IMG/VR virus record: IMGVR_UViG_3300035181_000471
Span: 157,218-221,217 of that record
Length of the DNA: 64,000 bases
Strand: one strand, 5' to 3'
Shown here: positions 4,827 through 61,264 of the stretch, in pieces
Numbering within the stretch: the stretch's first letter is position 1
How the letters are laid out: every line of letters begins with the position of its first letter
Notes under the pieces: model-generated
Databases searched by the model: none
What the model saw: the letters and a program-made list of their open reading frames with translations, nothing else
Told to the model about the DNA's origin: nothing
Made by a program: the position numbers and the translations under genes

Positions 4827-6182
4827 ATGCAATCGAATATGATGAGAAAAAGGGCCTTACAAGAAGCCAAGAAGTGTCCTGACTGTGAGAGTCAGGGTCA
4901 TGCTTGTGCAAAACACAACACTGTTGTAAGAGCGTTGGACCTACCTCAGTCTAAGAGTGCCATGCCCTCTAAGGAATATGAACAGGATAAGACCTACCAA
5001 GACAAGGGTTCCGAAACTGATTTACAAGTCAACATTCAAGGTGCCGTTAGTCCTGCTAAGGGAGTACTAGACTACATCAAGCAGAAGCGTGTTGCACTAG
5101 AACAAGTTCTACAAACCAGAGGTGAGGCAGCAGTAGTCACCATGGCTTCTAAAGATCTTGCTGAGACTGTCCCCGGTGTAGCCAACACCAACACCAGCCT
5201 GCTAGGTGGAGTAATCGCCAAATATCTAATCCAACTAACACAGAAGGCCAAAGGCCAGAAGGTGACCCCCGCTTTTAACGACAGCCAATTTCTACAAGAA
5301 ATCGAACCAATCCTAGAAAGGAAACACGCCTCCATGAACACCGCTGGAAAGAACCTAAAAGACAAGTCTGAGGAAGAATTAGAAGAGATGGAATCTTCTG
5401 ATAAGGCCAATAAGACCAAGATGAAGAGACAGCCAGAAGGTGACAAGAAGGCTTCCTCGAAGCTAGCCGCCGAAGGTGGAGCAGAGGACGAAGAAGAGAC
5501 TGAAGAGCAAACTTCTGTTGATTCAGCCGTGGTTGCCCTACTCGATTCCTGTAAGAACGAGTGGACCAATCTAGGTGAGCCTGTCAATCCTTCCACTTGG
5601 CCCAAGGAAATTGAAAGAGCCATTCTCAACCTAAACGACTCTATAATCAAAGCCATTGAGTCAACCGAGAGTAAGCTCATCGAGGGTGAGTTCTACTCTA
5701 AGAATGTTGACGAAGGTGTAAGCTCTGCTGGTGGTGGGTCTGCCATGATGAACGATCTATCTGTAGCTCCCGCTGAAGAAGGTGTAAATGGCGTCACCAA
5801 TGATGAAGTTGTAGAGGAAGCTCCTTTAGACAACGAGATCAAGGCCAAGAAGTCTTCCAAGACTGCCGCCGCTGATATCACCTCCACCGAAACCAAAAAG
5901 GCCCTCAAGTTCGTCGAAGATCTTCAGGAAAAAGTTGCCGCTCTGTTCTTCGACTATAAAAAGACCGTAGAAGCCACTAATAATTCTGCTCTAGTCAAGT
6001 CTGCTGGAGAGGATCTAGTTCGCCTCAAGACCAAGCTCAGCGAAGTAGAGAAGGTAATGAGCAAGCAGTTAACCGTTCTATCCGAGGCCGAGGAGTCCAC
6101 CGAGAAGCAGAACAAAGAAAACGCCAAGTCTTCAAAACAGTCATCCAAGTTTATGGGCCTATCTCTTGCCTCTGAAGAGTAA
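4827..6182 (+). CDS. K-x-A-motif protein, putative internal head/cargo protein
   Basis: 451 aa with a CPDC knuckle, acidic and coiled segments, and linkers KKASSKLAA and KKSSKTAAA; AAGGAG RBS. Confidence 0.6.
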   Translation: MQSNMMRKRALQEAKKCPDCESQGHACAKHNTVVRALDLPQSKSAMPSKEYEQDKTYQDKGSETDLQVNIQGAVSPAKGVLDYIKQKRVALEQVLQTRGEAAVVTMASKDLAETVPGVANTNTSLLGGVIAKYLIQLTQKAKGQKVTPAFNDSQFLQEIEPILERKHASMNTAGKNLKDKSEEELEEMESSDKANKTKMKRQPEGDKKASSKLAAEGGAEDEEETEEQTSVDSAVVALLDSCKNEWTNLGEPVNPSTWPKEIERAILNLNDSIIKAIESTESKLIEGEFYSKNVDEGVSSAGGGSAMMNDLSVAPAEEGVNGVTNDEVVEEAPLDNEIKAKKSSKTAAADITSTETKKALKFVEDLQEKVAALFFDYKKTVEATNNSALVKSAGEDLVRLKTKLSEVEKVMSKQLTVLSEAEESTEKQNKENAKSSKQSSKFMGLSLASEE

Positions 6183-6227
6183 TTAAAGGAAACTGCATTT
6201 TAATTTCTATGAAAGAGGAGTAAATAT

Positions 6228-6908
6228 ATGGCAGGCACATCTGACAGCTACCTTTACAGACAAGGCGCTTCCGCCCAAACGAAGTCTGTAATTTCTAGCC
6301 GCTTTAAAATTTTCAGTCATGTCGCTGGAGTGGGTAAGTTCGTGAAGATGGGTGTGACCACCTCCTTCAACATTTCCGAGTCCAAGAACATTGACACCAT
6401 TCGTGGTCTAGGCTATGGCGATCAAATTGCCGAGCTAGTCCCTGGCGTAACCCAGCCTATGTCCTTGACGATCAATCGTCACGCTCTCTACCTAGCCAAT
6501 ATCATGCAGATGTTCGGTTATAAGGCCGGAGCATCTGGACTAGTCCGTTCCCTCAAGCACCACAAGTGGCCCTTCGACATCAAGACCGAGATCGTGTTTT
6601 CTGAGCTAGCTTCAGAAGCCAAGGATACCGGACAGGCTCAGACTGCCGATGTTCCCTCTGAGGGTGGCCTAAACAATCTAGGAAACCCCGGCCTATACGC
6701 CATTGTAACCGTATACGAAGGTTGCTGGATGTCCAACTACTCCACCGCTTATCAGGTTGAGCAGGCCGCTGTATCTGAAGATGTGACTGTAATGGTCTCC
6801 GATGTCTTCGATGCTAACGGTTCCGTCTACGGTGAATTCATTGATTCCGGTCTAAATAAGGGTGATGCCACTGGCCGCTCCTTGAGACTAGCCAACGAAC
6901 CCAGATAA
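6228..6908 (+). CDS. tail tube protein
   Basis: 226 aa downstream of the sheath. Motifs IRGLGYGDQIAELVPG, WPFDIK and YEGCWMSNYSTAY...VSEDVTV match the myophage tube fold pattern. Confidence 0.85.
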   Translation: MAGTSDSYLYRQGASAQTKSVISSRFKIFSHVAGVGKFVKMGVTTSFNISESKNIDTIRGLGYGDQIAELVPGVTQPMSLTINRHALYLANIMQMFGYKAGASGLVRSLKHHKWPFDIKTEIVFSELASEAKDTGQAQTADVPSEGGLNNLGNPGLYAIVTVYEGCWMSNYSTAYQVEQAAVSEDVTVMVSDVFDANGSVYGEFIDSGLNKGDATGRSLRLANEPR

Positions 6909-6924
6909 CCAACAAAAACCGATG

Positions 6925-6957
6925 AAAGGCCCCTCATAAAATAGAGGGGCCTTTTTC
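6925..6957 (+). terminator. intrinsic terminator
   Basis: AAAGGCCCCTC / GAGGGGCCTTT stem followed by a T run. Confidence 0.85.
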
Positions 6958-6999
6958 ATAATAAACTGACTATTGCACTCTTTAAGTGAACGGTAGTAT

Positions 7000-7773
7000 A
7001 TGTCAAAAACCAAAATAGCCGACATCAACGACATCATAGAAATCCCTGGGAACAAGCTGTTCGACAACGGTCTTTGTGTAGATGCTGGTCTACCTCCGCT
7101 TACAGATAGTGCAGAAGGCACGGTAGTTGTAAGCTCCCTACTCAAGAAAAAGGGGGATTTAAATGAAGAACTCACGAAGAACCGCACTTACTACGACAAG
7201 ACTTACCAGACTGCACCAGGGCGTGATGGCGGTAACCCATTTGCTTCAAAACGAAATGAAGAGGATCAGTTACAGACTCAAGCAGACCCGCAGACGCATG
7301 ATCATAAACCTCTCCGTTCTTCTGAGGATAAGGCGTGGATGGGATCTATGGGCATAAAGCAATCGGAGTACCATAAAGATCCCGATGAGCTTCCCCCTAG
7401 GGAAGACCTTAGAAACTATAGTGCTGAGGGGATCAAGAAAGAAGTTCTAGAAGAAGATCGTGATTTAGAGAAAACCTCCTCCTTATTAATTGGATCATTC
7501 AATCATACCGTTGATACAAAAAGAGCCGCTGTAAAAGTTGCATCTGTAAAATCGTTAAGAGCATTCGTAACTCCTACTAATATCAAGATTCACGACCAAC
7601 ATCTAGTTGTCAATCTTCCAAGAACTGCCTCTCGTGACATCGAGTTTGATTCCAAGAAGCTATCCGCTATCGAAAATGAAATCTCCAGGGCTTTAAATGT
7701 GAGAGCTAAATACGCTCATTTTATGGTGTCCTCGTCCTATGACGGTGTGGCGTTGGAGTTTCTCTTATGCTAA
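7000..7773 (+). CDS. hypothetical protein (K-x-A motifs)
   Basis: 257 aa preceded by the late motif at 6969-6989; contains KRAAVKVAS and RTAS. Confidence 0.6.
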   Translation: MSKTKIADINDIIEIPGNKLFDNGLCVDAGLPPLTDSAEGTVVVSSLLKKKGDLNEELTKNRTYYDKTYQTAPGRDGGNPFASKRNEEDQLQTQADPQTHDHKPLRSSEDKAWMGSMGIKQSEYHKDPDELPPREDLRNYSAEGIKKEVLEEDRDLEKTSSLLIGSFNHTVDTKRAAVKVASVKSLRAFVTPTNIKIHDQHLVVNLPRTASRDIEFDSKKLSAIENEISRALNVRAKYAHFMVSSSYDGVALEFLLC

Positions 7774-7879
7774 ACCGAGCTAAACTAAGTTCCAGGATCT
7801 ACTCTGATGATTATAGGGCTAGAATGAAAGTAGCCCCAAAACTTAGAAGGGAAAGAGAAGCCCTCTTGAAAGTGTAACC

Positions 7880-8743
7880 ATGCCAATCAACAAAACCGCA
7901 ACAGCCGTGTTAACTGACCCAATCTATTCTTTGAATGATTGGAACAAGCTTCATGGGCCAAAAGCCTTCGGCCAGAAGACCGCAGGCTTCAGCAAATTTG
8001 CTGGCAATACCTCCAAGTATCTTCTTTCGCATGTCACCATCATGTCTTCTGTCATGACTGAGAACGAGCCTGATGACTACCTCATCAAGCCTGAGTGTTC
8101 TTATCTAGTCAACCAGAATGAAGATGGTTGGGAAAACGAAGTTCTCAAGATGTCCTACAGATCCTTCGTAGGAGCTTTTAACTTCCTTGAACACATGCAG
8201 AACAGAAAGCAATCCAAAGGTCACATTATCGACTCCGTTCTCAGAAAGATCAGCATCACTGGGGATGTCTGGGTCTATTTCGTAGATCTCTTGGTTGCAA
8301 CTGACCTAGCTCACGAAAAGCTTGTGAGTCAGATCAGAAATGGCGAAGTAAAATATCTCTCGATGGGATGTGTCACCGATCTAGTTATCTGCTCATATTG
8401 TGGACACAGAGTTACTGAGGATGGAAATTACTGCAACCACCTATCATACAATAAGGGGCAGTTCATCCCTGACGACGATGGTGTGTCTAGAAGAGTGGCC
8501 GAGCTTTGTGGTCACAAATCCCTACCCAACGGTGGCGTAAAGTTCGTTGAAGCCTCATGGGTAGAGATTCCCGCTTTCCCTGGAGCCGCTGTAAGAGAAA
8601 TCATTGCAGACTCTTGGGAGGGTCCAAAGACCGCTTACACCAAAGACGCAGAAGAGCTAGGAAGGCGTAAAGCCGCATCTTCATTGATTCTACCCGGAGC
8701 CGATGCTACTGATGCCGCCTTTAATAGATTGCTTATGAGGTAA
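7880..8743 (+). CDS. prohead (capsid maturation) protease with Zn-binding insert
   Basis: NFLEH...SKGHIIDS, KYLSMGC, CSYCG...CNH insert, and FVEASWVEIPAFPGA. This is the assemblin/HK97-type protease pattern, and the gene sits directly upstream of scaffold and capsid. Confidence 0.85.
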   Translation: MPINKTATAVLTDPIYSLNDWNKLHGPKAFGQKTAGFSKFAGNTSKYLLSHVTIMSSVMTENEPDDYLIKPECSYLVNQNEDGWENEVLKMSYRSFVGAFNFLEHMQNRKQSKGHIIDSVLRKISITGDVWVYFVDLLVATDLAHEKLVSQIRNGEVKYLSMGCVTDLVICSYCGHRVTEDGNYCNHLSYNKGQFIPDDDGVSRRVAELCGHKSLPNGGVKFVEASWVEIPAFPGAAVREIIADSWEGPKTAYTKDAEELGRRKAASSLILPGADATDAAFNRLLMR

Positions 8744-8823
8744 ACTATTAAAGCTATGCAATATTTAAACTTTTAATGTCTTTAAAGAAGAAGTCGAATT
8801 TCAAATAACCAGGAGTCTTCAAC

Positions 8824-10116
8824 ATGACCGCAAAACCTTCACTAAGAGAAAGAATCGCTACCCTAAAGGCCGAGAAAGAAGCCAAGACCGCCGCTTCTGC
8901 TTCCAAATTCTCTGCTAAGGAAGCAAAAACTCGTGTAGCCGCTTCTTGGACAATCGCCAAGACCCTACTTCCCTCCGCTCCTAGCGAAGTGCAGTATAAG
9001 TTGGCTTCTTCCCTACTAGGGAACTCCACCAATGCTTTGACCGCCATCGTGCGTCAGGCCGCTGTAAATGCTCACTGGACCAAGGTCGCAGAGAAGTTCG
9101 AAGAGATGCACAAGGTCGAACTAAATGAGCTAATCGAAGACCCCTCTCTTCTCAGCAAGATGCAGAATGAAGTTGAGAAAGAGCTAAAGGGCGAAGCCAA
9201 GAATGCTTCTGCTAAGTGTGAGTGTGGTAAACCCGGTTGCCCCGAGTGCAACCCTAAGACTGCAAAGGCTAAAAAGGCCGAAGGTGAGAACAAGCCCATT
9301 GAGAACAAGCCCATTGAGGATAATGAAATCAAGGAACCCGAAACGGAAGTCCCCGCTCCTTCAGTTGAAGACTCCTCTATGGAAGACTCCTCTATGGAAG
9401 ACTCCTCTAATGAAGCTGACGCCGATGCCTCTGATGCTCCCGTTTCTCCTGCCGAGAACAAAAAGGACATTCTAGTAGAGCAGATTCAGACCATTAAGGA
9501 TGATGTTGCCGCTCTAGAGGAAGAAGTAACTGAAGGCGAGGAACTTGACTTCTCTGCCATCTTCGATGAAGAGGGAATGGAAGACAAGGCTGACAATCTA
9601 GCCAATGAGAATGAGGATTTTGATGGCGACATCGAAGCTTCTGGTGAAGGATTCTTCACTCCCTCTGATGCTGGTGATCTAGAAGGCGCAATGGACGCTG
9701 ATGGCATGGACTTCGCTGACGCTTCTGACTTCTTCTCCCACTCCGCCTCCGTAGACTCTATGGATGGCTTATTCGCTGGTGAAGCCAAGACCGCCGCTAA
9801 GGATGATGTCATTGCTCCTGGTGAGATGGGTGACAAGATCGTAAGCAAGGGAAATGTGGATGATGCTGAGTCGGACCACGAGGACAACATCCTATTCGAA
9901 ATCCTAGGCGATATCAAGTCTGTTGCTTATGAAGATGGCGAGTATAAGAGAACCACTGAGCCTAAGTTTGAGAAGGCTGCTTCTGCCAAGCCTGCTCCTG
10001 CTGTGAAGCGCCCAATTCGTTCCCTAGGTAATGTGAAGACTGCCGCTCCTTCACAAAGCGTTGAGAAGACTGCACTGGCTTCTCTAGTCTTCCCCGATGA
10101 CGAACTCTTCGGATAA
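8824..10116 (+). CDS. capsid scaffolding protein
   Basis: Lies between protease and capsid genes. Coiled-coil N-terminus, very acidic centre, many KTA/KxA sites, hydrophobic C-terminal LVFPDDELFG. Confidence 0.7.
   Translation: MTAKPSLRERIATLKAEKEAKTAASASKFSAKEAKTRVAASWTIAKTLLPSAPSEVQYKLASSLLGNSTNALTAIVRQAAVNAHWTKVAEKFEEMHKVELNELIEDPSLLSKMQNEVEKELKGEAKNASAKCECGKPGCPECNPKTAKAKKAEGENKPIENKPIEDNEIKEPETEVPAPSVEDSSMEDSSMEDSSNEADADASDAPVSPAENKKDILVEQIQTIKDDVAALEEEVTEGEELDFSAIFDEEGMEDKADNLANENEDFDGDIEASGEGFFTPSDAGDLEGAMDADGMDFADASDFFSHSASVDSMDGLFAGEAKTAAKDDVIAPGEMGDKIVSKGNVDDAESDHEDNILFEILGDIKSVAYEDGEYKRTTEPKFEKAASAKPAPAVKRPIRSLGNVKTAAPSQSVEKTALASLVFPDDELFG
9286..9408 (+). repeat. in-frame 15-nt tandem repeats in scaffold
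   Basis: GAGAACAAGCCCATT x2 (ENKPI) and GAAGACTCCTCT(ATG) x3 (EDSSM). Confidence 0.85.
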
Positions 10117-10133
10117 ACAACACAAATCAAGTT

Positions 10134-10169
10134 AAGTTGAGGCCCTGGGAAACTGGGGTCTCAACTTTT
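10134..10169 (+). terminator. intrinsic terminator
   Basis: AAGTTGAGGCCC...GGGTCTCAACTT stem followed by a T run. Confidence 0.8.
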
Positions 10170-10312
10170 ATAGACACAAATTTAAAGTAAAAGTACAAGT
10201 AAAGAAGAAATAAAATTAGCAATCCTATATTACATGAGACTTATCTCCTTGTGATCTTGCACTGTGCTGATCCGGTAAGCCTCGACCAAAATTTCTATAG
10301 GAGATACTTATT

Positions 10313-10807
10313 ATGTATCTTGAGTTGGAATACTACGGCCAGAACGATGGCATGACCATCCCTGATGTAGTCCTAACTGGCGATCCTGGTGTTGATAACG
10401 CAACCCTAACCGCTGGCGGCTATAACAGTGGTGCGCTCGTGTCCGTTAAGGCTGGCGTCACCAACAATGCCAATGGCATTGTTATCAATCCCTTCATTGG
10501 AACTTCTTCCACTGAAGTCCCCTACGGCTTCCTGCTTCTAGGTGCTGGACAGTTCTCTTCCTCCATTACCCCCTCCGGTTCTGGGAAGACCCCTGTTGTT
10601 CGCGCTCTACCTAAGTTCAAGCTACCTTCTTCTCAGGTAGACGGTGCTGGTACTGCTGGACTAGGCAAGTACATCTACGGTTCTCAGGTTACTGCTGGGA
10701 AGGTTTCGTTTGCCCCCGGAACTAACAACGGGCTAACCCCCGTGGGTATCTGCACCCACCTCATTACCGCTGCTGAGCCTTGGCTTGGCGTGTCTTCGTT
10801 GCTATAA
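10313..10807 (+). CDS. head decoration/cement protein
   Basis: 164 aa, Gly-rich and beta-type, immediately upstream of the capsid gene; AGGAG RBS. Confidence 0.65.
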   Translation: MYLELEYYGQNDGMTIPDVVLTGDPGVDNATLTAGGYNSGALVSVKAGVTNNANGIVINPFIGTSSTEVPYGFLLLGAGQFSSSITPSGSGKTPVVRALPKFKLPSSQVDGAGTAGLGKYIYGSQVTAGKVSFAPGTNNGLTPVGICTHLITAAEPWLGVSSLL

Positions 10808-10822
10808 GAGGAGATAACTACT

Positions 10823-11728
10823 ATGGCTACTCTATCCCGCACCCAAGCACAGACCGCTCAGCTAGGTCAGATCCTAAAGACCGCCGCTGGCCGTCAGAAA
10901 CTTGCCGCCGCTCTCGGACCTTCGCTCCGTAGACGCCGCGACTATATGTCCATCGCTCGTAAGGCCCTCATGGTTGAAACACTACCTGATGGCGCACTAC
11001 CAATCTACGACAAGGAATTCGATGAAACTGGTCGTTCCTTCGTTGAAGCATTCGTAGTAGGTGAGCAGGGTGGCGACATCGTGAAGTTGGCTAACCCCCT
11101 TCGCGTAACCGTCCCCACCTTCGAAATCGCCTCCAACCCAATGATTCCTATCACTCAGATCAAGGAGCGTAGATTCGACATCGTTTCTCGCGCCCTAAAT
11201 CTAGCAAAGGCTGAAATTGGCGCTGCTGAAGATGGTTTCGTGTTCAACCTCTTCGATACGATTGCTACTGCTGCCAACGGCAAGGCTACCAGCGATCCTA
11301 TCTACAATGTGAACTACCCCCTATCTGGTAGCATCACTCCTGATGCTATGGCCGATCTATTCGGACAGGTCCAGAGACATGACAACTCCGTTGCCTATGT
11401 ATTCGTCAATCCCCGCGATTACACTGACTTCCTCAAGTGGCATGACTCCACCCTAGACCGTGAGACCCAGAGACACCTACTCAAGACTGGTATCATGGGC
11501 TACCTCTGGGGCGCAACCGTCCTACAGAGCAGAAAAGTGGGCTACGGCTCAGTTTATGTCCTAGCTGACGCTGAGTTCCTAGGCGTAATTCCTGAGAGAG
11601 TTCCTCTCACAGTGCTTTCTGCTGATCGCCCTGACCTCCGTCAGATCGGTTTCAGCGTCTTCGAAATCGCTGGATTCCTCGTCTTCAACCCCTCTGGCGT
11701 TCAGAAGATGATCGTAACTCGTCCCTAA
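10823..11728 (+). CDS. major capsid protein (HK97 fold)
   Basis: RDYMSIARKALMVETLPDGALPIYD, VPTFEIASNPMIPITQIKERRFDIV...AEDG, GIMGYLWGATV, and C-terminal GFSVFEIAGFLVFNPSGV. Strong RBS and a downstream terminator. Confidence 0.9.
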   Translation: MATLSRTQAQTAQLGQILKTAAGRQKLAAALGPSLRRRRDYMSIARKALMVETLPDGALPIYDKEFDETGRSFVEAFVVGEQGGDIVKLANPLRVTVPTFEIASNPMIPITQIKERRFDIVSRALNLAKAEIGAAEDGFVFNLFDTIATAANGKATSDPIYNVNYPLSGSITPDAMADLFGQVQRHDNSVAYVFVNPRDYTDFLKWHDSTLDRETQRHLLKTGIMGYLWGATVLQSRKVGYGSVYVLADAEFLGVIPERVPLTVLSADRPDLRQIGFSVFEIAGFLVFNPSGVQKMIVTRP

Positions 11729-11750
11729 TCAATACCTAGGGATCTAAGAT

Positions 11751-11776
11751 AAGGCCCCGCTTCGGTGGGGCCTTTT
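11751..11776 (+). terminator. intrinsic terminator with cUUCGg loop
   Basis: AAGGCCCCGC-TTCG-GTGGGGCCTT-TT. Confidence 0.9.
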
Positions 11777-11833
11777 CCATTGCAGTTAATTTTTTTCTCA
11801 ATATTTGCAGTAATAAACCATGAAGGAGCTTAT

Positions 11834-12454
11834 ATGCAGAAGCAGTATGTCAGTAACCACACAGTCAATTTCTCGGACTTTAAATTCTTTGTCCGTCCAG
11901 GGGATGTTTGTGTGCATAACGAGGCCACAAATGACTTCGTGATCTACCGTAATGGCGACCTAGTTGCTACCCTCAAGACCTCAGTCATGGCTCTCAAGAG
12001 CATGATGACCCCAGAGACCAACTATTTCTCTGAGATCAAAGAAGATGCTGTCCCCAATGTTGTTGTCGTAGATGACGCTCCTGGCGACGATAAGATCACC
12101 CTTATTAACGAGCTAGCCTCCAAAGGTCTAGATGACCTGGAAGCTGGTAATGTCACTTCTCAGGAGGACGCCAAGCTCAAGCTTTCCAAGTTTTCTGTGG
12201 AAGAAGAGGGGACCGATGAAGATCTTGCCGATGACGAAGAGGGCACAGAGACTACTGGAGTGGCAGTTGCCACCGAAGAAAAGGGTGTGACCGTAACTCA
12301 GGTAGATCTTAATGAGGAAGCTATCGTCCAAACCATTCCCAGTGATCTAGCTCCCCCAGTCAAGGAAGTCATCGTAACTAAAGACCCTGATAAGATCAAA
12401 GCTATCGCTGAGGCTCAGAAGGCTAAGGCCGCTAAGAAACCCAAATCTAAGTAA
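11834..12454 (+). CDS. hypothetical protein (acidic centre, basic tail)
   Basis: The ORF-track start at 11765 lies inside the terminator; ATG 11834 has an AAGGAG RBS. Confidence 0.65.
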   Translation: MQKQYVSNHTVNFSDFKFFVRPGDVCVHNEATNDFVIYRNGDLVATLKTSVMALKSMMTPETNYFSEIKEDAVPNVVVVDDAPGDDKITLINELASKGLDDLEAGNVTSQEDAKLKLSKFSVEEEGTDEDLADDEEGTETTGVAVATEEKGVTVTQVDLNEEAIVQTIPSDLAPPVKEVIVTKDPDKIKAIAEAQKAKAAKKPKSK

Positions 12455-12488
12455 ATTGACTTTCCCTTACATTTGTAGGTGGTAAGTT

Positions 12489-13235
12489 ATGGCCGAAACT
12501 GAGCAGAAACCAAGAATGTGGATGAGTATACCCCTCCAACACTTGGCTTCTAAAAAATACAAAGTAGCCTTCTCCATCAAGGAGTTAGCACAAGCTTCAA
12601 ACGATTTTTCTAAGAAGTATGTGGGTGGATGCACACCATCACTAATCAAGTCCGAGCCTAAGAAGCTCTTCATGCACTATAGGGTTACCTGCACCAAGGC
12701 CGATTCAGACCCCAAGGGTCATGAAGTCAGGGTGCAGTTTGACCTTTCTAAGATCGACACCTCCTCTACCATCAACAATCTAGATGTGAGAGTGTCGTGT
12801 AGTTGCCCAGCTTTCCTATACTGGGGCGCTCAGTGGAATTTGAATTCCCTCGATTCTTTAGAGGGTGTGCCTCGTCCTGAGCTAAAGGCTCCAACCGAAC
12901 AGCTTGAAAAGCGTGACACATACTTCATTTGCAAACATATCAAGGTGGTTAGTGACAGAATCACTCCAGCTATCGGTAATGTTCTTAATAGAATCAAGGA
13001 CAGGCTCAGACTTGAGAAGATCCGTGATGATAGAGAGCAGGAACTAGCTGATAAGAAGTTAAGACAACAAGAGCAGGAAACCAAACAGCAAGAACCAGAG
13101 AAGCCTCAGCCACAAGAGCAAGCATCTCCAGCTACTCCCCCTAAGCCCAAGAAGCCGCCTGTGAAGCCTGATAGGGGGCATCTTGACATGGGACAGAGCA
13201 AACCGTCCAGGACAAGACCTGGGGTCATTAACTAA
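12489..13235 (+). CDS. SWIM zinc-finger domain protein
   Basis: VRVSCSCPAFLYWG...FICKHI matches the CxC...CxH SWIM pattern; Gln/Pro-rich tail. Confidence 0.75.
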   Translation: MAETEQKPRMWMSIPLQHLASKKYKVAFSIKELAQASNDFSKKYVGGCTPSLIKSEPKKLFMHYRVTCTKADSDPKGHEVRVQFDLSKIDTSSTINNLDVRVSCSCPAFLYWGAQWNLNSLDSLEGVPRPELKAPTEQLEKRDTYFICKHIKVVSDRITPAIGNVLNRIKDRLRLEKIRDDREQELADKKLRQQEQETKQQEPEKPQPQEQASPATPPKPKKPPVKPDRGHLDMGQSKPSRTRPGVIN

Positions 13236-13246
13236 GCGAGAAAGCC

Positions 13247-13669
13247 ATGCACGAATTACTTGTCAAGAAAGCCGCCCCTTTAAGCGATGATGCCAAAGAC
13301 CGCCTTGGTCAGCATGGTGATGTCGTAGTTGAGGAGAGGGCTATCGGTGATTACGAATTCTTCCTGGTTCAGAACCGTTATATGCGTTATGTCCAGTTAG
13401 GTATGCAAAGAGTGGGTCAGGACATGACCAATATTGAGGAGCAGACAACCAAAATCCCTCAAGAAAAAGGAAAATTTTCTATGAGTGAACTGAAAAGTTT
13501 GCTCAATGAGTGGGTATTTGAATATGAGAAGATCCTGATTGGGACTTACGAACCTAGAAAACGAGCATTCTACGCTAAGATTATCAGGGCGCTAGGATTC
13601 AAATTAGGCGAGATGATGGTGGCCGGACATTCAGTCCTGGTCCTCAACGAACCCGCCGATAGCGAGTAA
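13247..13669 (+). CDS. hypothetical protein (N-terminal KKAA motif)
   Basis: 140 aa starting MHELLVKKAAP. Confidence 0.55.
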   Translation: MHELLVKKAAPLSDDAKDRLGQHGDVVVEERAIGDYEFFLVQNRYMRYVQLGMQRVGQDMTNIEEQTTKIPQEKGKFSMSELKSLLNEWVFEYEKILIGTYEPRKRAFYAKIIRALGFKLGEMMVAGHSVLVLNEPADSE

Positions 13670-13727
13670 GTCCTTCCATAAAACAGACTTTCAGAATCTT
13701 AAGATGTAGGATTAACAAGGAGTCTAT

Positions 13728-13925
13728 ATGGCTAAAATTGCCGCTACAGATAACACCGCTATGAACAAGCTCTTCGCCCTTGAAGCCACCAAAGCTGGCA
13801 GTAAGGTCGCCGCTGGAGATGTTCAGGCATTCGAAGATCACAAGGACTATGTATCCACCCTAGAGTCCATCCTCAGCGATGACAAGAAGACCTCTTGGTC
13901 CCCCAACGATCTTCTACTAGACTAA
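13728..13925 (+). CDS. small K-x-A-motif protein
   Basis: 65 aa, AAGGAG RBS, late motif at 13687-13707; MAKIAA and SKVAAG. Confidence 0.65.
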   Translation: MAKIAATDNTAMNKLFALEATKAGSKVAAGDVQAFEDHKDYVSTLESILSDDKKTSWSPNDLLLD

Positions 13926-13940
13926 AGATACGAGGTTCAA

Positions 13941-16253: not shown

Positions 16254-16272
16254 TATACGAAAAAATGCATTT

Positions 16273-16307
16273 AACTTCGGGGATTGAATAAGTCCCTGAA
16301 GTTTTTT
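16273..16307 (+). terminator. intrinsic terminator
   Basis: AACTTCGGGGA / TCCCTGAAGTT stem followed by a T run. Confidence 0.8.
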
Positions 16308-16368
16308 GTTTAAAAATAAGTATCAATAGATGAGCGAGTAGTTAACTTGCAAGAACGAGGTATACTTA

Positions 16369-17717: not shown

Positions 17718-17769
17718 AACTGCTCTCATTTTAAAACTTTCAGCCTCTAGTATAGAGCGGAGTCATGCA

Positions 17770-18048
17770 ATGCGTTCCAAAAATAATCAAATCCATTACC
17801 TAGGAAGAGTTAAGTCTACCATTCCTCCTGCGGAAAAAGGTGCTAAACAAGCCGCTTCTATGGGCCTTGTAAGGATCGCTGGGAATGTTTTTGAATGTCC
17901 TAGCTCTAAGGATTTATGGAAGGTTGAGGGTTCCAAGGTCATTCGACTATCCTCATCTGAGGTAGATAATGACGAATCCCTCAAGCCTGCGAATAAGGCG
18001 AATCCTTCCAAGTTCTTGAAAGACATTCTAGCTGAACTAGAGCTATAA
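17770..18048 (+). CDS. hypothetical protein
   Basis: 92 aa, GGAG RBS, late motif at 17736-17756; KQAAS. Confidence 0.6.
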   Translation: MRSKNNQIHYLGRVKSTIPPAEKGAKQAASMGLVRIAGNVFECPSSKDLWKVEGSKVIRLSSSEVDNDESLKPANKANPSKFLKDILAELEL

Positions 18049-19857: not shown

Positions 19858-19863
19858 GGGGTA

Positions 19864-49718: not shown

Positions 49719-49755
49719 ATAGCTAATTTGAGAGTCTATATTGAAGGCGTCATCC

Positions 49756-53988: not shown

Positions 53989-56784
53989 ATGAAACTTAGT
54001 GCATTGACTCTCTTAGCCGCCATTTCTGATGGGAAGAAGCGTATTCTAATGGACCGCTATGGTGCCACAGAAGAACAGCTAACCATTGTAGATGCCGCAG
54101 ACCCAACATCCTCCGGCACATATGCTGAGTGGATTACTCGTTCCTGGCTTAACCAGCACCTAATCAACCTTCCTGAAGACACCGCTATTGTCCGTGCTGA
54201 CCTAGGTAAGTTCAATCGTGTTAAGAATAAGGCTGAGTGGGGACAGAACTCCAAGGATGTAATGACTTACAATCCCGAGAGACTTCGTGCCGCCCTACTC
54301 ACCGTAACTGAGCCAAAGGCTGAAGGCATCCCTGATGTCTCCGCTGAAGTCCTCATTGATGACGGAACTTACATTATGTGGAAGGTCACCACCGTAGCTG
54401 ACGCTATGGCGCTATCCGCTAAGTCCGGTTGGTGTACAAAAGGCGAGAATATGGCTTCTCATTACCTAAAGGAAGCTCCTTTATACACCGCATTCAAGAA
54501 CGGTGAGCCTCTCTTCCAGTATCACTCTGGCGGAACCACCGGACACCCCCAGTTCATGAACCGCTTCAACTCCACCATGCAGTCTGCAAAGATCATGAAT
54601 GCTGAAGCTTACGACCTCATCTCAAGAGTTCCAAACCCAGATCCCGACCTTGTTACCGTTCTAGAAAAGTTCAAGGCTCCTAACCTATCTGAAGCTGAAA
54701 CCTTCTCCTACCTCAAGGATGTCCTCGCCACCAATCCAGAGTTCGCTAAGGGAAACAAAGAGTTTCAGGAACTAGAAAGAAGGTTCCTTGAGCAGAGATA
54801 CAAGATCTTCGATGAAGAAGAGCTAGTGGCCCTCATCGACAAGTATGGGCGCACTGGAGAAGTCGTATCCAAGTTCCTTGAGGACAACCCAAGAGTCCGT
54901 GGTATCATCAAGAAAATTGAAGACACCCCCGACTGGGCCGCTCTCTGTAAGGCTATGGAGAACAATGAAACCTTTGACGAGAACGAAAAGAAGATCATCT
55001 TTAAGATCCCTGGCCTATTCTCCAAGGTATTCGCCAAGTTCTCAGCCGCTAATAATTTTGATGCTGAAGTTGCTACACTAAAGTCTCTGATCAAAGAAGG
55101 TAAGGACACAGAAGCCTACGAGCTAGCCAACAAGCTAGTCAAGCTCCTAGGAAGTGGATTCCAAGAGCAGAGATACCGTTACTACAATGACCCTCAGGGA
55201 ACCATACCTTGCATTAAGAACTCTGCTGGCTATGCCGCCGTTCAGAAATACAAAGACATCATCATCAACATGGTTCGTCCTTTGATGGCCTCCACTCTAA
55301 CCAACATCGCCAATAAGGGTCTCGGTCTAACCGAACTAGCCAAGGAACTAAATGAAGCCATCGACAAGATCCAATCTGCCGCTAACAACGACAACAAAGT
55401 AATTGAGTGGTGCAACAAGCGTAGAAAGGAAATCCTAGTCCCTGCGGCTAAGGCTTCCGTAGCTGAGGCTGTTGCTAGTGCCTCTACTTTAACCGATCTA
55501 GCACAGGTCATGGGAACTGTTGAGCGCAATCTAGATCAAGCTCATATCAACTGGCAGGAAAAAAACGAAATCAAGGAAGAGATCAAAACCAATTCCATCA
55601 TCCCTAGGATCAAGGAAGAGTTTGATGCTATCACCAACTCCTCTGCTGGGAAGTCCTTCGAAGAGCTAGCCAAGGAATTCAAGGACAAGTATAACGAAGT
55701 CATCGGTGTATTCAGATACGACAGCACTATCGAAGGTGTCCTTGCCTCTATCGGTAAGGAAATGCTAACTGCTGGCCTAACCACCGATCTTGCCACTGTT
55801 CCTAAGTTGAAAGCCGTCACTGACAGACTCGACGCTCTAGACCTAGAGACCTTCCACTGGGCCGAGCGTATTGCTGAGAACCGCAAGGCTGAGATTCGTG
55901 CTGAGCGAGATGCCAAGGCACAGGCTCGTGGTGAGGCTCGTGGAACTGGTGATACCACAGTAAGAACTCGCTACGCTCCAAAGAAGGAGCTAGAGACTTA
56001 CTACAATCTAATGAGAGCATGGCAACACAACCCTGACACGGTAGCTCGTGGCGAGAAGCCTAAGCTCTCTGACAGGGGAGAAACATTCCTAATTACATCT
56101 CCTACTATCAATCTTAGTGACGCAATCACCTACTTCAAGGAGCAGGGTAAGACCTCTCCAGAATTAGAAGCCAAGATTCTAGCTTCCAATAATCTCAGTG
56201 CTGGTATTTCCTACTTGAGAGAGGTAAAGAAGGAAGCATGGCCTGAGCTAGCCGAGAAAATTCTTGATTATGGTTTTGATTCCGAATACGCCAAGGCTTA
56301 CAAGGAAGTAGTCTTCAAGGACAAGGAATGGCCTGAACAGAAAGCCAAGGCTGTTGCGGCGTTCACCAATGATTCCGTAGCTCAGAACCACTACCTCATC
56401 AATGAGATGAAACAGTATAATGATAAGAACAACGAGGGAGCCAAGTGGGGCCTTCTAGAGAAGAAAGCCTTAGACTTCCTATCCTCTGGTCAGTTCGACA
56501 GCATCAGACACGCTTGGTGGGTGAATGATCGCTTCTTTGAACCTCTCCTCGCCTATGTCAAGTCTACCAAGAGCCGTCTAGATAAGAAGCTAGAAGAGAA
56601 GGTCTGTGAGAAGAATGAAGACTTCGCCACCAAGTATCTCTTCACTCTAATCCCCAAGGATAAGATCTCTGAGATCATCGAAAAGTATTCCGCCGCAACT
56701 GAGGCATCAGAAAAAGCCAAGACTTCTTCGCACCACTTTAACCTCTTCGCCGCACTAATGAAGGAATTGGAGAACTACCTATGA
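53989..56784 (+). CDS. DPT/WCT-family protein with long helical region and WPE repeats
   Basis: ADPTSSGTYAEWI...KDVMTY...SGWCTK...HYLKEAPLY; C-terminal Y...(W)PE repeats. Confidence 0.7.
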   Translation: MKLSALTLLAAISDGKKRILMDRYGATEEQLTIVDAADPTSSGTYAEWITRSWLNQHLINLPEDTAIVRADLGKFNRVKNKAEWGQNSKDVMTYNPERLRAALLTVTEPKAEGIPDVSAEVLIDDGTYIMWKVTTVADAMALSAKSGWCTKGENMASHYLKEAPLYTAFKNGEPLFQYHSGGTTGHPQFMNRFNSTMQSAKIMNAEAYDLISRVPNPDPDLVTVLEKFKAPNLSEAETFSYLKDVLATNPEFAKGNKEFQELERRFLEQRYKIFDEEELVALIDKYGRTGEVVSKFLEDNPRVRGIIKKIEDTPDWAALCKAMENNETFDENEKKIIFKIPGLFSKVFAKFSAANNFDAEVATLKSLIKEGKDTEAYELANKLVKLLGSGFQEQRYRYYNDPQGTIPCIKNSAGYAAVQKYKDIIINMVRPLMASTLTNIANKGLGLTELAKELNEAIDKIQSAANNDNKVIEWCNKRRKEILVPAAKASVAEAVASASTLTDLAQVMGTVERNLDQAHINWQEKNEIKEEIKTNSIIPRIKEEFDAITNSSAGKSFEELAKEFKDKYNEVIGVFRYDSTIEGVLASIGKEMLTAGLTTDLATVPKLKAVTDRLDALDLETFHWAERIAENRKAEIRAERDAKAQARGEARGTGDTTVRTRYAPKKELETYYNLMRAWQHNPDTVARGEKPKLSDRGETFLITSPTINLSDAITYFKEQGKTSPELEAKILASNNLSAGISYLREVKKEAWPELAEKILDYGFDSEYAKAYKEVVFKDKEWPEQKAKAVAAFTNDSVAQNHYLINEMKQYNDKNNEGAKWGLLEKKALDFLSSGQFDSIRHAWWVNDRFFEPLLAYVKSTKSRLDKKLEEKVCEKNEDFATKYLFTLIPKDKISEIIEKYSAATEASEKAKTSSHHFNLFAALMKELENYL

Positions 56785-57350
56785 GTCTAACGGACAGCGT
56801 TACCCCAATTAGAAAGGGTCACATTAGGATCTTTGAAGAGGGTAATCCTTCCAACATCCTATATGAGAACGACAATGCTATCTGCAACGGAGCCTCTTGG
56901 CTCTTCGCTAGAATGTTCGCCAACATCAATGAGCCTCAGAATGGGGTATGGGGTCTAGCTGTAGGCGCTGGTGATTCTACATGGCCTGCTAACAACCAGC
57001 CAGATGCCATGCCTACCCAGACTGCCATTATCACCCCAATCGCCCGTAAGCCCCTGTCTAGCGCCAAGATGGTCGATGCCAATTTCAATCAGGTAGAGCA
57101 TTCCACCTTAGTTGAGTTCCAGACCGTTCTAAACGCAACTACAGATAACCTCCTGATTCCCATCAGAGAGATGGGTCTAATCGGTGGCGGGACCGCTGGC
57201 ACGGATATGATGAACCAGATCAACACCCCCTTCTTTGATCCAACCAACCCAAACAACAATAGCGCCGTTCTAATCAACTACAAGACCCTCCCTCCCCTTC
57301 TCCTACCTTCCGGTATTAACTTTGTGTTCTCTTGGACCCTCGCATTTTGA
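56781..57350 (+). CDS. tail-collar/baseplate-type structural protein
   Basis: N.I.N....LFA...GLAVGAG...IARKP...IREMGLIGG...LINYKT......FSWTLAF, a pattern seen in myophage collar/baseplate proteins. Confidence 0.65.
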   Translation: MSLTDSVTPIRKGHIRIFEEGNPSNILYENDNAICNGASWLFARMFANINEPQNGVWGLAVGAGDSTWPANNQPDAMPTQTAIITPIARKPLSSAKMVDANFNQVEHSTLVEFQTVLNATTDNLLIPIREMGLIGGGTAGTDMMNQINTPFFDPTNPNNNSAVLINYKTLPPLLLPSGINFVFSWTLAF

Positions 57351-57393
57351 CCAAAAATACAAACTTTCAGTATTGTTGTATACTGGAGTGTTT

Positions 57394-58500
57394 GTGCCAA
57401 GAACAAAAGAAGCTCAGAAGTTATATCTAGAAGCTAAGAGAAATGAAACCCCGCCTGAGGGTCAGCTATGTGAAAATGGCTGTAACTCATTGGCGGGGTT
57501 TCACCTTATGCGTAGCATCAAAACAGAAACCGGGACAATTATTAGGTGGTTCTGGTGTTGTTCCAACCACTACAGAAAATGTCCTGCCAAACTCAAAAAG
57601 GCTGAAGAAGCCCGAACCGCCACTTCGCTAGCTAAGTATGGTGTAGCTCATCATATGCAGCTAGCCGAGACTATTGAAAAACGAGATAAGACATCTGTTA
57701 AACTCTTCGGAGTTTCTCATGCCATGAAGCTACCTGAAGTAATAGAACGAAAGCATCAAACCGAAATAAAGAATAATGGAGACCTGGGTCAAAGTTACAG
57801 GACTAGATCGGCGGCTCTCATGGACACTCACGGAGTGGAGAACATCTCCCAGGTTCCTGGTGTAGCAGAGAAGATACAAGAGTCTATCCTACAGAGGTTT
57901 GGGGGTTACTTCTCCTCTAACGAAGAGTGGAAGCGCCAGTATAAGGAGGTCACTGGTTATGAACACCCCAGGCAAAGACCGGAGGTTGAAGCGCAAAGAG
58001 CCTTGACTTGTATTCAAAGATATGGGGTTAAATACCCTCTTCAAATAGGGGTATTTAGACAGAAAGCCAGGGCTACATTCTTAAGGAAATACGGCGCTCC
58101 CCATCCAATGCAGTCACCAGCTTTCTATTTTGCTAAGCTGAGAAACGGGTATAAATGGAAGCCCTTTACTTATCCAAGCGGACGAGTCATAAACACTCAA
58201 GGATATGAATCTTTGATCATTCAAGAGCTTCTAGATTCAGGAGTCCAAGAAGAAGACATCTATGTTGGGTTAGAATGCCCCAACTTCGAATACTCATTTG
58301 AAGGCAAAGAGCGTAGATATTACCCTGATATCTATGTAAAGAGTCAGAATTTAATCATTGAGGTTAAGTCTACTTACACCTATCAAAGAAATTACGAGCT
58401 AAATCAAGCTAAGAAAGCTAGCATAAAATCTGCTGGTTATGAGTTTCAATTTAGAGTTAAGCACCCTAACCGTCTGCAAGAAACTACTTTAATCAACTAA
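57394..58500 (+). mobile_element. putative homing endonuclease: (K/R)YGV repeats plus PD-(D/E)xK nuclease domain
   Basis: Repeats KYGVAH, LFGVSH, THGVEN, RYGVKY and KYGAPH; C-terminal QGYE...RRYYPDIY...IIEVKS. Likely GTG start at 57394 after GGAG. Confidence 0.7.
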
Positions 58501-59114: not shown

Positions 59115-59444
59115 ATGGAAGAAGGCTTGACAATGCGACACCTTACCGGGGACAAGTACGAAGTGTCTCTAGGAGGATGTAAAGCCATAATCGAATTTCA
59201 TCATGGCTATGTAGAGGTCAAGGTAATCACCTCTGAAAATAAGCGTAAGGGCGAAGCCCGACAGCTACTCCTTAAATTGAAGGACCGCTACGGTCATGTC
59301 GAAACGGAATCATGCATAGACTCAAGCATAGCCGCCGAGGGAGCCCAAGGAGCGGAACCCTTTTGGCAAGCCATGTTGAATGAAGGCGTGGTAAGATTAG
59401 TAGGAACGATGGAAGGCAGAACACTACGGAGCAAACATGAGTAG
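59115..59444 (+). CDS. GNAT-like acetyltransferase
   Basis: NKRKGEARQLL (motif A, R-x-x-G-x-A) and AEPFWQAM; GGGAGG RBS. Confidence 0.55.
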   Translation: MEEGLTMRHLTGDKYEVSLGGCKAIIEFHHGYVEVKVITSENKRKGEARQLLLKLKDRYGHVETESCIDSSIAAEGAQGAEPFWQAMLNEGVVRLVGTMEGRTLRSKHE

Positions 59445-60558
59445 TAACAATCTAAACTGGTCTGACTTAATCAAGTTAGCTCATGGCTTCGACATCGAAG
59501 CAGCGGCATCAGAGGCGAAGAAGAACGCTTTGGCAAAGAAGTATGACATGCCTCTTGAGGATGTTAATGCTTGCTCTGAAATTGACCCAACACCTAATGG
59601 TGAATATACCGAATGGCTATGTAAGGAACTGAAGCGTGATGAGTTGGGGTTTGATCGTATCCCAGCCCATGACATCACAACGCATCTAGTCATATTCAGC
59701 AGGCTAAAGAACTCCCCAGAATTCAGGAATGCTTGCGCTAAGCACATCTATTCAATGGATATCAACAAGTATGACTTGTCCGAGTTTCTGGTGAAGATGA
59801 AAGAAGCAGAGAGCTTAGTGAGTAAAAATCAGAGGATAAAAAATGTCCTGACCAAAAGCCTACTATGGTCCGGTGAGTTTGAAGGGCATAAGATCGAGGT
59901 ATTCAAATTTGAGTCCAATGAGGAAGCTTACGCTCTTATCTCTGGTGGCCCTAGCCTGAGTCGTCATTTTAACCCCTCTCCACAAACTTCCTGGTGTACC
60001 ACCCAAGAAGATACCGCCAGGGACTACCTAGAGGAAGGTGACGCCTACATCATCCGTGTGGACGGCAAGAACTATTGCAACCTCCATGAAGGTTCCTCAC
60101 AATGTATGGATAGTGCAAACCGCTCTTTCGCTACTAACCGCGTGATCAAAGACCCCATCGTAGAATTCGCCATAGAGGAGGCCAAGATCCATCTGGAATA
60201 CTTCAAGACCAGCAATGGCAATGTGCCAGAATGCTCTGAATGTCATGAAGCCCTTGGAGGTAAAGTTTATCTCGATACCAGGGAGGCATACGGGGAGGAA
60301 AAATTCCTATGCCAGAGATGCTTTGAGACCCTTTGGGTTAAAGACATTCAAGCATTCATCAGGGATCTCCCATCAGAGTACTTCGTTGAGCCTAAGACTT
60401 ACGAAAACGAGTATAAATGGATTCAGGCTCTATGGGAGCTAGACGGCAAGGAGCCAGGGGGACGCAATTTTTGGAATCCTGAGGATGTCAAGCAAGCACT
60501 AGAGCAGATGGGTGTGTATAGCGAAGCCATTTACACCGGACCAATAACCACAGAGTAG
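59437..60558 (+). CDS. DPT/WCT-family protein with one zinc ribbon
   Basis: IDPTPNGEYTEWL...DINKY...TSWCTT...ARDYLEEG; CSEC...CQRC. Confidence 0.7.
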   Translation: MSSNNLNWSDLIKLAHGFDIEAAASEAKKNALAKKYDMPLEDVNACSEIDPTPNGEYTEWLCKELKRDELGFDRIPAHDITTHLVIFSRLKNSPEFRNACAKHIYSMDINKYDLSEFLVKMKEAESLVSKNQRIKNVLTKSLLWSGEFEGHKIEVFKFESNEEAYALISGGPSLSRHFNPSPQTSWCTTQEDTARDYLEEGDAYIIRVDGKNYCNLHEGSSQCMDSANRSFATNRVIKDPIVEFAIEEAKIHLEYFKTSNGNVPECSECHEALGGKVYLDTREAYGEEKFLCQRCFETLWVKDIQAFIRDLPSEYFVEPKTYENEYKWIQALWELDGKEPGGRNFWNPEDVKQALEQMGVYSEAIYTGPITTE

Positions 60559-60571
60559 GTCCAACGATTTT

Positions 60572-61264
60572 CTACTTGATCTCTATAGCACCGACTGGTT
60601 TGTTCGTGGCGCATGATTGCATTAGCTGGCTTATGTAGCTAGCTCTCGTTTGCCCTGCCTGCTTCCACTTCAAGATTTTCGTGACTGGGGTATTGGCATA
60701 ATGAGCTAGATTAGGAAACTGATCCAATATGTCGTAAGCCACAGGTGCAGGCATGTCGTGGATCATTTCTTTGTCAGTCATGTCAGGATAACGGTCAATG
60801 TAGTCATTGATCCAATCCACGGACTCTGGTTTCAAGTAAGAGTATTCCCCAGACTGTAGCATATCGCTTAGGTGGTCTTCATCAATTTCGATATTGGCGG
60901 TCAGGTTGCGGCCATCCACAACAGCAACGAATAGAGCGGGTGGAATTTGATCTTTTTGACTATCGAAGACCAGATCTTCTTGACTATCGAAGACCAGATC
61001 TAGTGGAGCGGCTCTGTCTCCAGCGTAGCCTAGAGCCATAGCTAGATTAATGGTGAGGTAGACGGCCTCTTGAGGTTGCAAGGAAGCTCCCCATCTCTCC
61101 CCACGCTTAGGATCAATCGTGAGCCCTTCAGCTAGGATCTTCCTGGCTAGGTCATCATGGCAGTTCGCAATGCCGTGGTAATAGGTTTCCGCCTTATGGA
61201 TGTCCATTGGTGGGGGAGTGGCTCTGCGGTTTAATCTGGCCTTCATGGTTAGGAGCTTGGACAT
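60572..61264 (-). CDS. ADP-ribosyltransferase-fold (HG...VYLT...A..YA) protein
   Basis: YYHG...KILAEGL...AVYLTINLAMALGYA. Likely start MSKLL at 61264, after GAGG and a late motif. Confidence 0.55.
   Translation of the reverse strand: MSKLLTMKARLNRRATPPPMDIHKAETYYHGIANCHDDLARKILAEGLTIDPKRGERWGASLQPQEAVYLTINLAMALGYAGDRAAPLDLVFDSQEDLVFDSQKDQIPPALFVAVVDGRNLTANIEIDEDHLSDMLQSGEYSYLKPESVDWINDYIDRYPDMTDKEMIHDMPAPVAYDILDQFPNLAHYANTPVTKILKWKQAGQTRASYISQLMQSCATNKPVGAIEIK
60956..61001. repeat. 24-nt-period in-frame tandem duplication (DLVFDSQ x2)
   Basis: TTGACTATCGAAGACCAGATCT occurs twice. Confidence 0.85.

Follow-up and report, generated by a model that had tools for sequence, protein, structure and literature searches.

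A predicted [K/R]-x-A-[S/A/G] cleavage motif for a family of prohead proteases in jumbo phages

In phage T4, the prohead protease gp21 cuts after L/I-x-E and processes itself, the scaffold at many sites and internal proteins whose leaders end in the motif; the Alt protein is packaged and processed as well. The herpesvirus assemblin (UL26/UL26.5) recognises V/L/I-x-A followed by Ser and acts at a release site and a maturation site, and the C-terminal tail of HK97 gp4 (MEROPS S78) is believed to direct this protease to the inside of the capsid. In the jumbo phages phiKZ and SPN3US, the proteases gp175 and gp245 cut at S/A/G-x-E, with Ser preferred at P1' in SPN3US (PMC10052503), and many head proteins are processed, including propeptides with multiple copies of the motif, as mass spectrometry and mutants have shown (PMC10052503, PMC5694885). 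The present analysis concerns the prohead protease gene at position 7880 of a stretch of 64,000 nucleotides (IMG/VR virus record IMGVR_UViG_3300035181_000471, positions 157,218 to 221,217; the window, below). The sequence comparisons described here indicate that [K/R]-x-A-[S/A/G] is probably the cleavage motif of the jumbo-phage protease family represented by this gene, which would be a new specificity.

The predicted features of this locus resemble those of T4 in the short P3-x-P1 motif, the self-processing, the multi-site scaffold and the N-terminal leaders, but in the window motif P3 is basic and P1 is Ala, where T4 has a hydrophobic P3 and Glu as P1; the window protease also carries a Cys/His cluster, and searches of Pfam and the PDB, which would include T4 gp21, gave no match. 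With phiKZ and SPN3US the phage shares its jumbo size and, by sequence statistics, a motif found in many head proteins, whereas the protease lineage and the P3 and P1 residues differ. The likeness to assemblin comprises Ala at P1 and Ser or Ala at P1' (provided that the scissile bond is where it is predicted to be), a site between the protease core and a C-terminal extension, most distant relatives being protease-scaffold fusions, and a site about 20–25 residues from the scaffold C-terminus; at P3, however, the window motif has Lys or Arg and not an aliphatic residue, and Pfam and PDB searches revealed no match of the protease to the herpesvirus family. The order protease, scaffold function, major capsid protein (MCP) is that of HK97, but the scaffold is a separate protein in the window, and comparisons with HK97 gp4 by hhalign and with Pfam S78 were negative.

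Motif excess in the head gene block

The window is a late structural gene module from an uncultured jumbo myophage, whose nearest cultured relative is Tunturiibacter phage Tunturi_5, a jumbo myophage of 309 kb (67% nucleotide identity for the MCP gene and 60% amino-acid identity for the protease). Genes and proteins are named below by their first nucleotide in the window. A first-pass annotation of the same DNA had claimed that K-x-A, followed mostly by S, A or G, recurs in about 15 late proteins, and all the motif strings that it quoted are present at the genes named. Comparison with shuffled sequences bore out the recurrence: the whole window contains 51 K-x-A-[SAG] sites against 23.4 expected from whole-protein shuffles (p<5e-4), and the excess is restricted to the head gene block (4827–23238; 17 proteins, 5557 aa), where 37 sites were counted against 10.5–13 expected (z of 7–8), shuffling within blocks of 10, 20 or 40 residues giving expectations of 11–13. 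The remainder of the window (14187 aa, with 24 proteins in the count of N-terminal sites), which encodes sheath, tube and fibres, contains 14 sites against 13.5, in agreement with the earlier remark that the motif is less conspicuous in tube and fibre proteins. The signal is directional, since the reversed motif [SAG]-A-x-K was found in the head block 6 times against 10.5 expected. Unbiased scans of the head block placed KTA first among 8000 tripeptides (15 against 2.5, p 7e-8) and K-x-A first among 400 gapped pairs (86 against 44, p 2e-8), and neither ranked high in the other 14187 aa of the window.

The 41 sites are encoded by 34 distinct 9-mers, and the DNA pattern AARACNGCN stands in frame in 16 of its 18 occurrences; therefore, selection acts on the protein and not on a DNA repeat. 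Thr is favoured at the middle position (11/41), and the residue after Ala, which the search pattern restricts to S, A or G, is Ser in 18, Ala in 16 and Gly in 7 sites. Arg can stand in for Lys (R-x-A-[SAG], 11 against 4.2; the ratios at P3 are 3.7 for Lys and 2.6 for Arg), and none of the other residue combinations tested came near the enrichment of K/R-x-A-[SAG]. Sites within the first 40 residues occur in 6 of the 17 block proteins, against 1.07 expected, and in none of the 24 proteins elsewhere, an arrangement corresponding to the N-terminal leaders of internal head proteins of the T4 and phiKZ type. A signal-peptidase site of the A-x-A type was considered for these sequences and rejected, position -3 being basic.

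Shuffling of individual sequences indicated a significant excess in proteins 4827, 7880, 8824, 10823, 18059, 22903 and 49741, and conservation in relatives backs 13728, 13941, 17770 and 19864. Most of the approximately 15 proteins named at first pass are supported in one of these ways; 7000 is weak and 13247 undecided. Two did not stand, namely 59437 (IKLAH) and the entry at 61264 (HKAE, in the minus-strand gene 60572–61312), which show no enrichment and have no small residue at P1'.

The protease and its family

The assignment of 7880 as a head maturation protease, already made at first pass, agrees with its match to PHROG 18299 (Table 1) and with a Foldseek search of BFVD, which revealed phage G gp19, phiRSL1, PaBG and many entries named prohead serine protease; 22 matches were at E≤1e-3, with template modelling (TM) scores of only 0.3–0.47, the predicted local distance difference test (pLDDT) value of the AlphaFold model being 65.6. 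It is through these matches to phage prohead proteases only that the model would connect 7880 with the assemblin-type fold, and no Pfam family, S78 included, was matched. The protein has 329 close homologues, and 1381 family members were found at E≤1e-3 in a library clustered at 50% identity.

Conservation was scored in 121 homologues with pairwise identities of 53–94%. Residues S161 (in an SMG motif), H105, H115, H51, S57 and S226 are invariant among them; S161 is the candidate nucleophile, with H105 and H115, an assignment made from invariance only, because no link to HK97 gp4 or a solved structure emerged from sequence, profile or structure comparison. Directly after the candidate catalytic serine there is a conserved Cys/His cluster (C164, C171, C174, C185, H187, C210 and H212; aa 164–212, window 8369–8515) that looks like a zinc-ribbon insertion, which would be unusual for prohead proteases, and C-x-H ranks first of the gapped pairs when the catalytic cores of the 150 family representatives described below are scanned.

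Three candidate self-processing sites near the N-terminus and one site near the C-terminus (Table 1) are conserved in position with a variable middle residue. At the first of them, K5 and A7 are each kept in 117 of the 121 homologues; the second (K33 in 115/121, A35 in 111/121) has the consensus K33-[T/S]-A35-[S/A], and the third (K39 in 114/121, A41 in 106/121) the consensus K39-[I/V/L/F]-A41-[A/G]. AlphaFold modelling predicts a folded core at about residues 47–228, and all four sites are located in flanks of pLDDT<50 on both sides of it, the N-terminal ones within segments 1–15 and 32–43 and the K264 site within segment 263–276.

The motif recurs family-wide outside the catalytic core. For this comparison the 150 best representatives were taken, one per cluster of 50% identity; most of them have 450–1300 residues and consist of the protease fused to a long C-terminal extension. 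[K/R]-x-A-[S/A/G] is enriched about threefold in their N-terminal leaders and C-terminal extensions and not in the core, where K-x-A-[SAG] was counted 32 times against 35.5 and R-x-A-[SAG] 19 times against 30.3. In the C-terminal extensions, K-x-A is the top gapped pair (451 against 248 expected), with K-x-A-[SAG] at 193 against 59.5, R-x-A-[SAG] at 138 against 46.7 and the reversed motifs at expectation, and the N-terminal leaders give a like picture; for the 150 representatives as a whole the reversed motif was counted 82 times against 108 expected. The first [KR]-x-A-[SAG] lies at most 40 residues past the end of the core in 81 of 129 fused relatives, compared with 15.3 in shuffled sequences. 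Cultured members of the family include phage G, the Bxz1-like mycobacteriophages, phiRSL1, BcepSauron, Yoloswag and Rhodococcus phage E3, and further members occur in hundreds of metagenomic phages of 200–460 kb. K-x-A is the top gapped pair in gp94 of the Bxz1-like Mycobacterium phage Rizal (19 against 8.3), and gp19 of phage G has K-x-A-[A/S] sites on both flanks of its core.

Scaffold, capsid protein and other candidate substrates

The gene order from the sheath to the MCP (Table 1) is common to Tunturi_5 and seven metagenomic relatives with contigs of up to 463 kb (individual relatives are designated L011 and so on), and the succession of protease, scaffold-like, decoration-like protein and MCP is kept in the window and eight relatives, the protease being encoded beside scaffold and MCP. 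A second conserved set of genes, located 3' of the MCP (16983, 17770, 18059, 19366, 19864 and 22903), occurs in the subclade represented by L020, and an identical copy of the 19864 protein is found on contigs of up to 287 kb. In the seven relatives, the ejection-like proteins, the pre-protease proteins, the proteases, the scaffolds and the MCPs are enriched in the motif, and no enrichment was found in their sheath, tube, 220-aa and decoration proteins.

Table 1. Positions in the window of the protease, its candidate sites and substrates, and other genes mentioned in the text.
Feature	Position	Strand	Remarks
Tail sheath	431–4321		~90-residue tail domain at aa 199–318
Tail tube	4377–4814		
Variable, cargo-like protein	4827–6182	+	451 aa; 6 sites; homologue of Tunturi_5 gp328
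Conserved protein	6228 (start)		226 aa
Length-variable protein, weak candidate	7000–7773	+	257 aa; family encoded upstream of the protease; 2 sites against 0.33 expected, p 0.04
Prohead (head maturation) protease	7880–8743	+	287 aa; PHROG 18299, E 3.4e-18, residues 84–237
N-terminal self-processing candidates K5-T-A7, K33-T-A35-G, K39-F-A41-G	7892–8005	+	conserved; pLDDT<50
Protease C-terminal site K264-A-A266-S267	8669–8680	+	K in 107/121, A in 118/121, S in 116/121; middle residue variable
Scaffold-like protein	8824–10116	+	430 aa; acidic middle; 6 K-x-A-[SAG] sites, 8 including Arg
Scaffold site K405-T-A-A	10036–10047	+	cut would leave a 23-residue hydrophobic-acidic C-terminal tail
Decoration-like protein	10313 (start)		
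MCP	10823–11728	+	301 aa; KTAA at aa 19, KLAA at aa 26; PHROG 2522, E 2e-43
Weak candidate	13247–13669	+	140 aa; single KKAA at aa 7, p 0.12
Small open reading frame	13728–13925	+	65 aa; KIAA at aa 3, KVAA at aa 26
Homologue of Tunturi_5 gp345 ('virion structural protein')	13941–16253	+	770 aa; KVAS at aa 504, KFAS at aa 510
92-aa protein	17770–18048	+	KQAA at aa 26, directly before a conserved SMGL... domain
Cys-rich protein	18059–19366	+	435 aa; 7 K-x-A-[SAG] sites, 9 by the broader [KR]-x-A-[SAGT]; p 0.0005
1009-aa protein	19864–22893	+	N-domain of ~215 aa, KTAG at aa 216, hypervariable middle, KTAS at aa 876, C-domain of ~130 aa
111-aa protein	22903–23238	+	KFAS at aa 14, KTAS at aa 66; 2 sites against 0.14 expected, p 0.006
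~90-residue tail domain	23830–27078	-	aa 130–230
~90-residue tail domain	37273–40923		aa 469–561
~90-residue tail domain	44517–48563		aa 790–836
686-aa protein outside the head block	49756–51816	+	probable start MKQAF; 4 K-x-A-[SAG] sites

The scaffold-like protein 8824 exceeds the shuffled expectation (6 sites against 1.59, p 0.004), and at least five sites stand at shared positions across eight relatives, whose acidic middles can hardly be aligned; the pooled relatives have 45 forward and 25 reversed motifs at an expectation of 17.5. An alignment read by eye indicated a [K/R]-x-A-small site about 17–27 residues from the C-terminus in all eight aligned scaffolds, with Arg in two of them. At the sequence level the layout is that of the herpesvirus type, one candidate site following the protease domain and another lying close to the end of the scaffold. 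The scaffold (10036–10116) and the 4827 family (6129–6182) both end in conserved tails, hydrophobic and then acidic (...LASLVFPDDELFG in the scaffold and ...FMGLSLASEE in 4827), which are found in relatives L011–L017 as well and may serve in capsid binding or targeting, separately from the predicted cleavage motif. The two MCP sites, which were absent from the first-pass list, compare with 0.26 expected from shuffles; both are kept in 9–10 of 10 relatives and may mark a short N-terminal propeptide.

The Tunturi_5 homologue of 4827 is annotated as a 'DNA ejection protein', by structure-based annotation only. The enrichment in 4827 (6 against 1.29, p 0.0015) is shared by its relatives, which have, when pooled, 30 forward and 10 reversed motifs at 12 expected. 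The C-terminal helical domain is the only well-conserved part of this family, and KTAA at aa 345 (5859–5870) stands directly before it, a boundary site present in eight of nine members. A similar plan was found in the 16 members of the 19864 family (68 forward and 23 reversed motifs, 22.7 expected), where about 600 hypervariable residues separate the conserved N- and C-domains and the boundary motif columns are common to 11, 9 and 13 members. In 17770, the residues before KQAA look like an N-terminal leader, and its L020 homologue has KKAA at the matching place and three further sites upstream (4 against 0.28 expected). The first-pass claim that sites lie at domain boundaries is borne out by these conserved/variable junctions of 4827, 19864 and 17770; as a rule for every site it is too strong, as 18059 indicates (see below).

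Protein 13941 contains K-x-A 14 times against 7.6 (p 0.016), and its KVAS and KFAS lie in a conserved central block and are kept in three of four relatives. A Cys-rich module of about 90 residues is common to the variable regions of 13941 (aa 356–432; 15006–15236) and 19864 (aa 481–556; 21304–21531), with 31.5% identity and E 6e-4, which suggests exchange between two motif-rich proteins. For 13728, homologues in Tunturi_5 (gp344), L015 and L020 keep K-V-A in all three cases and K-I-A with a small P1' residue in two (KIAQ in L015). Conservation of the 22903 sites is only partial, the L020 homologue having KRAAT in its N-terminal part. Outside the head block, protein 49756 has four sites against 0.55 expected (p 0.003), and its start and the KQAA/KVAS site are kept in L017.

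The Cys-rich protein 18059 belongs to a family in which the excess recurs: 52 sequences, down to 29% identity, contain 313 forward and 84 reversed motifs at an expectation of 63.5, with sites at the same columns in 28–40 members. A Foldseek search with the 18059 model found no match.

Of the two weak candidates, 13247 has no homologue among the relatives' loci compared, and the sites of 7000 are absent from its L017 homologue. The 7000 family (L011:6804, L012:8083, L013:7956, L014:6937, L015:8996 and L017:8708) ranges from 153 to 1057 aa with a short shared N-terminal stretch, BLAST supporting the relationship for L017 only and the others having been judged by eye. Its larger members are enriched; the L011 protein, for example, has 8 K-x-A-[SAG] sites against 1.7 expected (9 including Arg). 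This 1057-aa protein, encoded upstream of the protease in a relative of 463 kb (L011:6804–9977), contains a GNAT domain (25.4 bits, at a Pfam cut-off of 20.7), bracketed by KTA/A at aa 233 and KQA/A at aa 403, about 170 residues apart. The 'effector domains' that the first-pass annotation had envisaged are conjecture for the window: its cargo-like proteins have no Pfam match reaching the curated cut-off and no convincing PHROG match, and the single enzyme domain detected, the GNAT domain, belongs to L011. Of the first-pass interpretation, the motif code and the segmentation have support, and the injection of effector polyproteins does not.

Several other features of the window and its relatives were recorded. 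Homing-endonuclease genes (GIY-YIG, DUF7487/TnsA-like, HNH and Endonuclease_7) surround the protease and MCP genes at differing places in almost every relative (window 16369–16983 and 57322–58500; relatives L011–L017 and L020), and L013 also has an intein-containing gene. The listed starts of two open reading frames are probably too far upstream, homology placing them at an internal MQKQYV (aa 24) in 11765–12454 and at MKQAF (49756) in 49741–51816. Genes 51810–53423, 53989–56784 and 59437–60558 are three paralogues with a common N-terminal region of about 200–290 residues (E 5e-22 to 5e-8). The giant tail sheath (1296 aa), a tail-fibre protein and two more large proteins of the tail have a domain of about 90 residues in common (E as low as 2e-12; Table 1).

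Cleavage, degradation or delivery

According to the proposed mechanism, 7880 would recognise [K/R]-x-A-[S/A/G], preferring Thr at the middle position, and would cut after Ala, as the P3-x-P1 pattern of T4 gp21, phiKZ gp175/SPN3US gp245 and assemblin suggests. We infer the cleavage itself, the position of the scissile bond and the location of the substrates inside the head; that any product is injected into the host is speculative. Inside the procapsid, the protease would trim its own N-terminal leader and remove its own C-terminal tail, the predicted cut at K264-A-A266 freeing 21 residues; it would cut the scaffold into pieces, one of the cuts lying 23 residues from the scaffold C-terminus, and would act on about nine more proteins whose genes lie around those of the head. 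Short N-terminal leaders would be removed from 13728, 17770 and 22903, conserved terminal domains would be split from variable middles in 4827, 19864 and 13941, and 18059 would be fragmented.

Several observations weigh against this reading. The protease matched no solved structure when compared with the PDB by phmmer, profile and Foldseek searches, and hhalign of the family profile against HK97 gp4 was negative. Its conserved sites lie in regions that are conserved overall and could serve another role, and the same applies to the MCP, the whole N-terminus of which is conserved, so that the conservation of its two sites is not decisive and another role is possible. The module-wide K-x-A excess of phage G is modest (20 against 12.6). 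The expectation that sites map to disordered segments, which holds for all four conserved sites of the protease, holds for three of the nine sites in the AlphaFold model of 18059, several others lying in helices of moderate confidence; the earlier picture of protease-segmented proteins fits the boundary sites of three families and fits 18059 less well. A literature search, incomplete in coverage, revealed no experimental cleavage data for any member of the family.

A serious contender, falling a little short of an even chance, is that the sites are cleaved but that the substrates are assembly factors, i.e., core or scaffold-like proteins and leaders that are degraded and expelled before DNA packaging, and not injected cargo. 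No enzyme domain was found in the window substrates, the scaffold is likewise rich in candidate sites, and T4 gp22, gp67 and gp68 are precedents of core proteins that are destroyed; the nine sites of 18059 are spread over helices and loops, and judging from its model this protein has more the look of a core or scaffold component that is chopped up throughout. Against such a fate, 4827 and 19864 keep sizeable conserved terminal domains beside single boundary sites, which suggests stable products, the annotation of the 4827 homologue points to DNA ejection, and the GNAT domain of L011 is bracketed by two sites.

It is improbable that K/R-x-A-small is instead a short linear motif for docking, for instance to the inside of the capsid, to the portal or to the protease acting as a chaperone, with no scissile site. 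Sequence alone cannot tell recognition from cleavage, the motif occurs in leaders and tails that may carry targeting functions, and the scaffold and the 4827 family have conserved hydrophobic-acidic C-terminal tails; however, the motif stands at either side of the protease core and, in most of the fusions, at the junction of core and extension, as release sites would; the scaffolds, which have to leave the head, contain many copies of it; and it has the P3-x-P1-P1' shape of known prohead protease and assemblin sites. Least credible by far is that the excess simply follows from a repeated DNA element or from Lys/Ala-rich sequence of helical or low-complexity character: K, A and E are indeed frequent in several of the proteins, for which helices are predicted, but the excess keeps a z of about 7 in 10-residue block shuffles, the reversed motif is not enriched in the window or the 150 representatives, and other K/A-rich window proteins have no motif, K-x-A even being depleted in 53989 (3 against 9.8). 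Composition or coiled-coil bias was dismissed on the whole-protein and 10–40-residue block shuffles and the reversed-motif control, and a DNA-level repeat on codon diversity and reading frame.

If the sites are cleaved as proposed, it is conceivable, albeit doubtful, that the family and its code form a conserved chassis for protein delivery across a very large jumbo-phage group, in which hypervariable, shuffled payloads are excised and travel with the DNA into the host. Conserved leaders and terminal domains would load the proteins into the procapsid, and the protease would excise the payload segments. What raises this possibility is that the middle part of 19864 is hypervariable, that 13941 and 19864 have a 90-residue module in common and that two sites bracket the GNAT domain of L011; the module, the GNAT domain and the length variation of the 7000 family (153–1057 residues) give hints of modular payloads.

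The principle is textbook knowledge for T4 and phiKZ-like phages; in the literature searched, the coverage of which was incomplete, there seems to be no description of the specificity, of the family or of how widespread it is. Within the same limits, and with a prior report being possible, no published cleavage motif was found for phage G or for Bxz1-like, RSL1-like or Tunturi phages, nor was a virion proteome found for the Tunturi_5 clade; Tunturi 5 is a cultured phage. Short motifs of prohead proteases are known from T4-like and phiKZ-like phages and not from this family of 1381 members. The predicted specificity would allow scaffold, leader and mature regions to be annotated in genomes with few named genes, and it provides a candidate list of head-internal proteins and a clean experiment in cultured members. 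With Ala and Ser at P1 and P1' and a layout of release and maturation sites, the family would offer a phage example that resembles assemblin in substrate logic, beyond the fold. If the delivery chassis proved true, the motif would make it possible to predict from sequence which proteins thousands of uncultured giant phages inject.

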